From contig NC_082714.1 in the NCBI RefSeq assembly GCF_030144855.1, positions 132,432,001-132,496,000 on the forward strand: a stretch of DNA of 64,000 bases. Reading direction: 5' to 3'. Origin of the DNA: Hypanus sabinus (taxonomy: Eukaryota). Below the pieces are notes generated by a model that was given only the letters and a program-made list of their open reading frames with translations, had not been told where the DNA came from and ran no database searches. The position numbers and the translations under genes were made by a program. Positions 17,501 to 22,160 of the stretch are shown piece after piece; position 1 is the first letter of the stretch; every line of letters starts with the position of its first letter.

Positions 17501-17982
17501 AAGTATCAAGCCACCACTTATAAACAGTGTGCTCAGTATGAAATGAGTGGAGAATGAACCACTCCACAAAGAGTACACTTTGTAAAGTGCTGATGTTGTG
17601 CTGTCATCCCAAAATTGCCTTTACAACACCTATAATACTTTAGAAAATCTGGTGACCTATTTATTTTGCTACTGTTTCTGAAAAGCAACTTACTTAAGTT
17701 ACTTTCAGTATTGTCCACAATGTGAACAGATTTCAGATTTGAACCATCTAATGTTACAGGTATATTGAACCTTTAAAGATGACATTTAAAATGGCATTGA
17801 TACACCAGACTAGCTTCTCAAAGGTTTAACTTTAACTTGTACTATTAATTCAATTCTAGTTTTAATAGTTATTATCTGCATTTTAATTGCTTTATTAATT
17901 CATTTTGTGATTTTCTGTTAAAAGCACATTAGATAAATCATAGAATAAGCAGAACATTACTATAAACTGCAAGAAAGGTCTT

Positions 17983-19183
17983 TCTAAATCTTTTTATTAG
18001 TATTAGTAATATGGACAGAATACAAATGATATATTGATAAAGAAATTACCAACATACACATTCCATTACATATGAAAAAAAAACATACATAATAGTTACA
18101 ATATATATGAGTTTACCAAGACCTAAGCCATAAGATATATGTATGGACATAGTAAATCTAAATATTTCATAATGTATAATATAAAGAAAACAGAAAAAGG
18201 AAAGAAAAAAACAAAAAAAAATTTTTATAATGCAAAACTAGCTAATCTAATAACTATAACTAATAAGTAAAAAAAAGAAACAAAAAAAAGAGAAGGAAAA
18301 AAAAAGGGGGCTGTTTATAATATCTCACAAAAATAAGTATTCATCAATGCCGTCACTTCCAGTCGTCTCAAAATACATAAGCTAAAAGCTGGGAAATCAA
18401 ATGAACTTGGCACAGGGTCATATTACATCATATGAAAATGTTGAATAAATAGTCTCCATAACTTTTCAAATTTAATAGAAGTCTCAAAAGTACCACTTCT
18501 AATTTTTTCTAAATTTAAACATAACATAGTTTGAGAGAACCAATTAAATACAGTGGGAGGATCAATTTCTTTCCAATTCAACAATATAGATCCAACAAAT
18601 ATAACTTGCCGAGATTTCATTTTTTTTTAGATATTTACAGACTAGACATTTTTTAAATTCTGTACTCTCTTCAGATACTTTGGAGAGTTTATTTGAATTA
18701 GACCCTTTTCAAAAAGGGCTTATTTCAAAACTTTATAATATAATTATGAAGATACGTTCAGAGCCTCTTTATAAGACTAAAAAGGATTGGGAAAGAGAGC
18801 TTAGTTTTAGTATTTCTAGTGAGAATTGGGATAGAATTCTTCAATTAGTTAATACATCATCGTTATGTGCCAAACATTCACTAATACAATTTAAGGTCGT
18901 ACATAGGGCCCATATGTCCAAGGATAAATTAGCTCGTTTTTACTCTCATATAAGTCCTATTTGTGATAGATGTCATTCTGAAATTGCGTCTTTAACTCAC
19001 ATGTTTTGGTCGTGTTCATTTTTGGAGAAATATTGGAAAGATATTTTTGATATTATTTCTGCGGTTTTGAATATTGATTTACAACCTCATCCTATTACCG
19101 CAATTTTTGGTTTACCAATGTTAGACTCACTGCATTTATCTTCTTCAGCCCGTCGAATGATTGCATTTCTAACTCTGATGGCT
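17983..19183 (-). mobile_element. L1-clade LINE, 5'-truncated with 5' inversion, 11-bp TSD
   Basis: Minus segment 17983-~18592: SILLNWK..W..LEKI..F.K.W..F, 3' UTR and AATAAA. Plus segment ~18593-19183: YNLP..HFFRYLQ..FKVVHR..CDRC..HMFWSC..LMAR. TSD AGAAAGGTCTT at 17972-17982 and 19184-19194. Confidence 0.92.
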
Positions 19184-20359
19184 AGAAAGGTCTTAACAAG
19201 AACAATTCATGCATTGCTGTTCTCCGTTGTGAAATTGCAGAGAATTCACATCAACCTACATCACAGATAAATCAGAGATAGTATTTGCTTAGCAAACCTG
19301 ACCTTTGATACATGTGTAATAAATCATAAAAACATGCTGCTTCCCTTACCCAGTGGAAAATCTATGATTTAAAAAGGCTCAGCTTGCTCCTGGCATTTTG
19401 CGCTAGTTTCCTGATGATCTTTATGAGTAAGCTCAAACTAAGTTTTATTATCAATGAAAATTACTTCCCTCATGGTGTGACAAAGACTTCAGTTTCCCTT
19501 TGCCAAGTGGACTTGTACAATGTTAGGTAAACTAGGAGCTAAATATGATACCCCAAAGTAGTCAAAGTAAGTTCAGAAAAATCAATAAAGATGTAGTGTG
19601 TATGTATAAACAAGGGAATTGCAGATAAACATACAGAAAAAAAGCCTCTTATCCACATGCTGACCAGCAGCAAACTTGCTGATATGTATGAAGCGATTAT
19701 GGTGGTAACTAAAATGTCGAAGCTATTTACCTGCTTACATTTTCATGGCATTGTTCACAGGATTAACTGAAGAACTCAGAAAAGGAGCAAATGCACTTTC
19801 AAGCACTTCTGGAAAGCTGTTTCATTTACCTCTTGCAGTAAGTAACAAAAGTAACTTAAACTTTCACACCGGCCAATACATTTGATGTTATGCTGCTCAC
19901 GATAAGTGGCTACTGAATGAACTGAATTAAAACTCTAGGACCTTTGTTCAATTTTATTTTGTTTAAATGTATCCTTTCCAGTCTTTGGTGCATTGGGGTA
20001 ATCTACTCTTATAATTAGTCACTAATTAAATGAGAGAGAAATAAAATCAACTTAATTTATTAATTACTGTTACCACTGGTTTATTTTATAATCATTATAA
20101 ATTAATGATCACTGAAATGAATTGTCTACTGATTTATTTGAAAAGATATTGGACTTTACCTGCCAACAAACATATTATGTTGCAACTCAGTTTATGATTT
20201 ACTGATGGCTACATAATGGTATTTCAAAGTCATTCGAAGGTTTGGGTAACACCTTATCCAGAAATCTAGTCATGATGAATTAAGATTTGTCAATATATTG
20301 ATTTGTTCAAACAAGTCACTGAATAAAATTCTGACTTAAATATTTCATTCCTTTTCATT

Positions 20360-20620: not shown

Positions 20621-21460
20621 TCTATGACCACAATGTTCTTTACAACAAATGGCAAACAATTAGCACTAAAGTTACAAGCCCAGGACAGGATTGGTATACA
20701 TACTGAATCACCTGTTTTCTCGTGTTTTTAAATATTTCTATTGCTAATTGAACCAGACAGTTTTTAGCTAATCTCTCTAAAACACTTTTTACATTTATTA
20801 TCACAGTTGTAAGAGACCAAGGGCAAGGATAAACCTTGACACATTGAATTAGACTTTTCTTTACTTCTCAATGATATTTCTCCAAACATTATTATCATCA
20901 ACTATGTAAGACTCCTTTGTAGACATGAATTACCCAAGAAGCCTGGACCAGTCCAATCAAGGTCCTTCCATCCAAGCACTGAAAACTAGTATGGCAGGTC
21001 ATTATATGCATGATCTGGTTTCCACACATAAAATATTTTAATATAACACTTAAAATACAAAATTTATATTATGTTTCAGCTGTATAAGCACTCCTTTACT
21101 AATCGTCACAATTCTGTTTTCTGGAGTGGTTGAAATGGGGAAAACAAAGCTCTCAATAACCACGCAGCCGTAGTCCAGACATTTCAGTTTTGCTAATAAG
21201 CAATTACATCTTTTAAAGATGGTGCTGGGTAAGTTTAAAATTGGTCAAATGTCACACTTACCGCGACTTTTGTGCGCTAAGAATTTGTATCCCAACGACC
21301 CACTTTCTTTTACTTACAAGATTATACTGGAGGAACTATCTGATAAACTAGAGTTAATCTAATCTTAATATCATTCTCGTCCAGATCCGTACAACAGTTT
21401 CAGAAGATCTAAATTGTATTTATGACTTGTAATACAATATATACAGTATTCTGGAATTAC

Positions 21461-22027
21461 CTTGGCGGCCACCGAGGAGCTGGGTTTCTCTAAAAGGTCC
21501 CAAAGTTTCTTCCTTTTGTCCGCACAGAAGGTGTTATCAAATTCTTCTCCCTCTCTGTCCCTCATGGTCTCAGCTTCTCGCTTCAGTTCCTCGTTCATTT
21601 GTTCCTTTTTCTGGTGATACCTGGCTTGGCAACAGGACTCCAGATAAATTTCGTCTATCCCCCAGTAGTCAAGCTCCTGGCTGAAGGACAAAGCGCACAT
21701 CTCTTCCATCATATGCAACTTGCCAGTACGGTAAAAATTCAAAATAGAAGTAAAAGCTCCCGGGTGACGATCAAAAAAGTACTCGTTCTCCTCCAAGTTA
21801 TAATCATCACAGCTCTCCATAAGGGACTCGTGAGTATTGCAATCCCGGAGCTTGCCCAGTCGCGTCCGGGGTAACCGGTCCAAGGTTCTCCACAGTACTT
21901 CGTGTGCAAGTCCCCCAACATTGAGTTTTACCCTTCTGGAACAAGCCTTGCTCCTGATGATCTCCACGGGATCTGGAGGTAGGGAGCTTGTGGATCGAGA
22001 CCCCCCTCTATTCATCCCCGTGGGCAT
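21461..22027 (-). CDS. KCNB1: Voltage-gated potassium channel Kv2.1, first coding exon (N-terminus and T1/BTB tetramerisation domain, 189 codons)
   Basis: [60 protein letters not shown]...[14 protein letters not shown] closely matches vertebrate Kv2.1. The MPxGM start and AHEV/SFSQELD favour KCNB1 over KCNB2. AAG|GTAATT phase-0 donor at 21460, the usual Kv2 intron position after VAAK. Confidence 0.96.
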
Positions 22028-22160
22028 GCTTCCAGTTTTCTTCTGCAAGGTTGGATATTATCTCACATTAACTATCCGAGCGTTGGATCTCAGTGCAAGA
22101 TTTTCATCTGGCTGCTTTTACACCCATCCTCGAAGCTGGAAAAAAAGGGAGAATAAAAAA
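22028..22160 (-). other. KCNB1: KCNB1 5' UTR portion with candidate splice acceptor (exon start 22135)
   Basis: Minus strand reads TTTTTTATTCTCCC(T)nCCAG|CTTCG, with AG at 22137-22136. Confidence 0.6.

Follow-up and report, generated by a model that had tools for sequence, protein, structure and literature searches.

Can the twin-priming outcome, in which the 5′ part of an L1 insert is flipped relative to its 3′ part within one target-site duplication (TSD), be recognised in a native L1 of a cartilaginous fish? The question is raised by a 1.2-kb insert in the genome of the stingray Hypanus sabinus. The twin-priming structure of L1 was reportedly set out by Ostertag and Kazazian in 2001, and to our knowledge nearly all descriptions of twin priming concern mammalian L1. 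The mechanism itself is already known, and the interest of the locus is that the L1 concerned is native to a host outside the mammals. An earlier note, made from the letters of this DNA alone, had proposed a twin-primed insertion, and the proposal is here supported by a single TSD, by the orientations of the two L1 pieces and their adjacency in the element, by a 4-nt microhomology and by the lack of loss at the inversion point. We consider it highly probable that the 1.2-kb insert is a single L1 retrotransposition resolved by twin priming. All positions given below are those of the window, the whole stretch of 64,000 nt of Hypanus sabinus DNA that was analysed.

In 5′-inverted human L1s microhomology at the 5′ junction is typical and the TSDs are long (Kojima 2010, PMC2912911). 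The TSDs of L1 inversions measure 10-20 bp (Yamaguchi et al. 2014, PMC4245944), and those of mammalian and zebrafish L1-clade LINEs 7-18 bp (Ichiyanagi and Okada 2008, as cited in PMC6007223). Yamaguchi et al. (2014, PMC4245944) compared de novo LINE inserts in human HeLa and chicken DT40 cells. Human L1 gave 5′ inversions in human cells; L1 in chicken DT40 and zebrafish L2 gave none, zebrafish Nimb-2_DR in DT40 gave a single one, and the authors concluded that 5′ inversions depend on both host and element (PMC4245944).

Results

One exact target-site duplication and its empty site

The features of the locus and the related L1 copies used as references are collected in Table 1. The 11-mer AGAAAGGTCTT is present as two exact copies enclosing 1,201 bp, at the very positions where the earlier note had placed an exact 11-mer TSD, and between the copies two head-to-head L1 ORF2 pieces and nothing else were found. 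Both copies coincide exactly with the ends of L1 homology. The probability of such a repeat by chance was assessed with a liberal control, in which stretches of 41 nt placed at random in the non-satellite part of the window were compared in 28,954 pairs; 0.055% of these had a word of at least 11 nt in common, which places a chance TSD at about 5e-4 or less.

Table 1. Features of the L1 insert, with window positions, and related L1 copies, with their sources.
Feature	Position or source	Strand	Remarks
Left TSD copy, AGAAAGGTCTT	17972-17982		Followed directly by the L1 3′ end in reverse complement
Non-inverted L1 3′ segment	17983-18592	-	ORF2 end, stop, 3′UTR; L001 680 onward
Single C at inversion junction	18593		Fits neither piece in the references
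Inverted L1 5′ segment	18594-19187	+	ORF2 C-terminal region with CCHC zinc knuckle; L001 67-679 at 81%
Right TSD copy, AGAAAGGTCTT	19184-19194		Nick site TCTT/AA between 19194 and 19195
L001	ENA metagenome ERZ23499067, scaffold 70148		Related L1 copy
L005	ENA metagenome ERZ23499067, scaffold 140840		Related L1 copy
L002	ERZ25070917		Several LINE fragments crowded on one contig of 16.6 kb

On the + strand the reconstructed empty site reads ...TGCA AGAAAGGTCTT / AACAAG..., with the nick in TCTT/AA, which is a variant of the site cut by the L1 endonuclease and the same sequence that had been claimed for the empty site before. The site is TTTT/AA-like, and the 11-bp TSD falls within the 7-18 bp expected of L1-clade LINEs. 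Sequence comparison of the flanks found no repeat copies of them in the window and yielded no nested-transposon reconstruction of the empty site.

The repeat can be stretched to 14 nt with one mismatch, GCA or GCT followed by the 11-mer, at 17969-17982 and 19181-19194. A 14-bp TSD with one mismatch was considered and rejected, GCT being better read as an L1 Ala codon that is present in both L001 and L005. The extra match before the 11-mer is probably due to chance, with a 14-nt stagger and a mismatched primer as the alternative.

The two L1 pieces

The flipped piece on the + strand was matched to residues 1038-1201 of human L1 ORF2p (E 1.1e-8) and, at approximately 18833-19036, to the Pfam family zf-RVT (PF13966) with 29.4 bits against a cut-off of 27.5 (E 1.3e-6), and the pattern CX2CX7HX4C of a CCHC knuckle is seen in its translation. 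Judged by this C-terminal ORF2 segment, the insert, a 5′-truncated copy that holds in its two pieces about the last 255 ORF2 codons, is an L1-clade LINE, a class taken here to include both L1 proper and the Tx1 subgroup. The flipped piece carries a single frameshift in the T-run 18620-18628 and is near 18666 shorter by 21 nt than its closest relative, L001. It has no 3′UTR or tail of its own and breaks off inside ORF2, where it meets the TSD; its final four nucleotides, AGAA (19184-19187), are common to TSD and element.

The sense piece on the - strand codes for the last 55 codons of ORF2 (SILLNWK...HMM, 18592-18426), followed by the stop codon at 18425-18423 and a 3′UTR of 440 nt with an AATAAA signal (reverse complement of 17993-17998). 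Its first 317 nt correspond to L001 680-990 at 82% identity. The A-tail, described earlier as nearly absent, is indeed not visible in the 10 nt that separate AATAAA from the TSD, and since the TSD starts with AA on the - strand, at most two tail A could be hidden in it. Likeness to L001 ends approximately 150 nt past the stop codon, and the 3′UTR of L005 has nothing in common with that of the - piece. The distal part of the 3′UTR, about 300 nt long (17983-18280, - strand), has no counterpart in L001 or L005 besides a shared T-rich tract; this stretch could be a subfamily-specific 3′UTR or a 3′ transduction.

Adjacency of the pieces in the element

Whether the pieces are neighbours in the element was judged from three independent related DNA copies (L001, L002 and L005) and from related proteins. 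The DNA copies are only 72-82% identical to the insert, and the junctions are therefore precise to about 1 nt and not absolutely. In L001 the + piece corresponds to 67-679 and the - piece starts at 680, in L005 the break between + and - pieces falls at 564/565, and L002 has the same AGAAGATCT at the junction. A word search with the + piece retrieved seven related proteins. The protein P0001 (256 aa, 82% identical) runs uninterrupted across the junction (...AFLTLMARRSILLNWKEINPP...), and when it was compared with the window by tblastn, residues 4-201 were placed on the + piece and residues 202-256 on the - piece, with the break at 201/202. For P0004 the break is at 140/141, residues 141-194 lying on the - piece, and P0005 is split at 228/228, nearly abutting. 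In all, three or four related proteins are continuous across the junction as LMAR-R-SILLNWK.

By these alignments the + and - pieces are adjacent in the element and no base appears lost or duplicated between them, within the limits set by the references. The contiguity in the protein of the head-to-head ORF2 pieces, proposed from the open reading frames alone, is in this way borne out by L001, L002, L005, P0001 and P0004, and alignment to the relatives, where the earlier note had named alignment to a family consensus as a way to check it, placed the breaks at the same base with all three DNA copies. L001 is also the nearest relative of both halves, with 81% identity for the + piece and 82% for the - piece, although the references are too few, and too remote, to supply diagnostic sites. 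A shared nearest relative at equal identity tends to speak against an origin of the halves from different subfamilies.

No other copies of the element were found in the window, either by blastn of the element or by tblastn with the seven related proteins. A metagenome search with P0001 returned only two distant loci of 34-41% identity, too remote to serve for a family consensus or a count of inverted copies. Vertebrate L1 fragments 72-82% identical to the Hypanus sabinus element are found in metagenome assemblies, where they presumably represent host DNA of a related fish in the samples.

Junctions with the target and at the inversion point

The sense strand of the element is the - strand of the window, and the sense 3′ piece ends at the side nicked by the endonuclease. 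The flipped piece has its 3′-most element coordinate against the outer TSD copy, and the sense piece begins at the next base of the element. At the outer junction the family sequence is GCTAGAA|GATCT and the window reads GCTAGAA-AGGTCTT, the AGAA belonging to both target and element. The microhomology of the TSD with the Arg codon, previously given as AGA, is real and comprises 4 nt, 19184-19187. The overlap TC/TCC that had been claimed for the inversion point found no support in the references: L001 has A at 66 and A at 679 (T on the + strand), so that neither piece accounts for the C at 18593. The C could be filler, or else a base that is substituted with respect to the references.

A model for the insertion

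The TSD, the orientations of the pieces, the sequence of the nick site, the microhomology and a contiguity precise to the base are read directly from the locus; the succession of steps and the enzymes at work are inferred from the mammalian model as follows. The L1 endonuclease would have nicked the + strand at GGTCTT/AACAAG (TCTT/AA), and the TCTT-3′ end would have served as primer for a reverse transcription beginning right where the poly(A) of the L1 RNA starts and giving the antisense cDNA that now occupies 17983-18592. An antisense L1 3′ end directly after the left TSD copy is what is expected if TCTT-3′ primed the first strand. The - strand would have been cut 11 nt off, and its 3′ overhang ...CCTTTCT-3′ would have paired its TTCT with AGAA in the same RNA, at an internal annealing site in the Arg-Arg codons of ...LMARRSILL.... 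From there a second cDNA would have been extended 5′-wards for about 610 nt, now lying from 19183 back to 18594. If the first reverse transcription halted exactly at the second primer, nothing would be lost or duplicated between the pieces. The two cDNA 3′ ends would then have been joined with one extra or ambiguous base, followed by fill-in, with the resulting order of TSD, flipped 5′ piece, sense 3′ piece and TSD. Being truncated and flipped, the copy would have been dead on arrival.

Alternative origins of the head-to-head arrangement

A final layout nearly identical to that of twin priming would be reached if a conventional 5′-truncated L1 (family position of about 67 to the 3′ end) had inserted first and its 5′ 610 nt had later been inverted locally, by two breaks that were rejoined or by a replication error, and the 4-nt overlap at 19184-19187 could in that case be a microhomology-mediated repair joint. 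Such an inversion would however need one break exactly at the boundary of L1 and TSD and the other within ORF2 without the loss of any L1 base. Inversions of this kind rarely leave both junctions so clean, whereas both the structure and the microhomology are predicted by twin priming (PMC2912911), and we give a later inversion only a small chance of being the right explanation. The clean outer junction also bears on a source element or transcript that was already inverted, was transcribed from an outside promoter and was retrotransposed whole. One TSD around both pieces would be produced in this way as well, but the end of the flipped piece coincides exactly with the TSD and shares microhomology with the target, which is a property of the insertion site and not of the source. 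Other copies with the same inverted arrangement were found neither in the window nor in the retrieved related loci, and a pre-rearranged source is regarded as most improbable.

Two independent L1 insertions, or an insertion combined with a rearrangement, could also have come to lie head to head, the 11-mer being a chance match, as short repeats do arise by chance. Against this, three references agree on the base at which the pieces abut, the 11-mer stands exactly at both outer edges and both pieces are equally diverged from L001. As the + piece lacks a 3′UTR and a tail and ends internally in ORF2, it cannot have had a target-primed reverse transcription of its own, which in practice excludes an independent insertion, and this origin appears scarcely credible. 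Twin priming of a single L1 is the reading adopted in what follows.

Discussion

The insert resembles the 5′-inverted L1s of human and mouse in having one TSD (10-20 bp there and 11 bp here) and a T-rich/AA nick site. As in those copies, the inverted piece comes from the part of the element that directly precedes the sense piece, its 3′-most coordinate lies at the 5′ TSD with a microhomology of a few nucleotides, and little or nothing is lost at the inversion point. It differs from the human and mouse cases in that the host is a cartilaginous fish and the element a native fish-type L1 distant from mammalian L1 (E 1e-8 with the C-terminal domain of human ORF2p), and in being a short insert of 1.2 kb with no visible poly(A) tail.

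A search of the literature on twin priming, in which the matches listed were mammalian studies, found no 5′ inversion of a native L1 outside mammals, the zebrafish L1 integration studies of Ichiyanagi and Okada lying outside that search. This fits the statement made earlier that twin priming is little documented outside mammals. In contrast to the cell lines of PMC4245944, the inversion structure is carried here by an L1 native to the germ line of a non-mammal. A base-precise case from the germ line of a stingray would mean that the twin-priming outcome is not confined to mammals. The inference drawn in the earlier note, that the capacity of gnathostome L1 for twin priming is ancestral, is an argument from parsimony that one locus cannot establish.

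A wider proposition, held tentatively and with a slight leaning to the negative, is that twin priming is routine for native L1 elements, and perhaps for Tx1 and RTE, in elasmobranchs, at a frequency comparable to that in mammals; of human L1s that have TSDs, roughly a fifth are inverted. If the proposition is true, 5′ inversion would be independent of mammal-specific host factors, contrary to what the cell-culture work suggests, and would be a property of L1-type integration older than the split between cartilaginous and bony vertebrates.

As to the surroundings of the insert, the first exon of KCNB1 was located on the - strand, as an open reading frame at 21371-22048 with its ATG at about 22027 and a match to residues 1-199 of Kv2.1, a protein of solved structure (E 1e-119). 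This position of exon 1 places the L1 insertion approximately 2.3 kb inside intron 1 of KCNB1, and not upstream of the gene. KCNB1 and the sense L1 piece with its AATAAA run in one direction. From the standpoint of KCNB1 itself, a large intron harbours an ordinary dead fragment of L1. It is the features to the right of 22048 that lie upstream of KCNB1.
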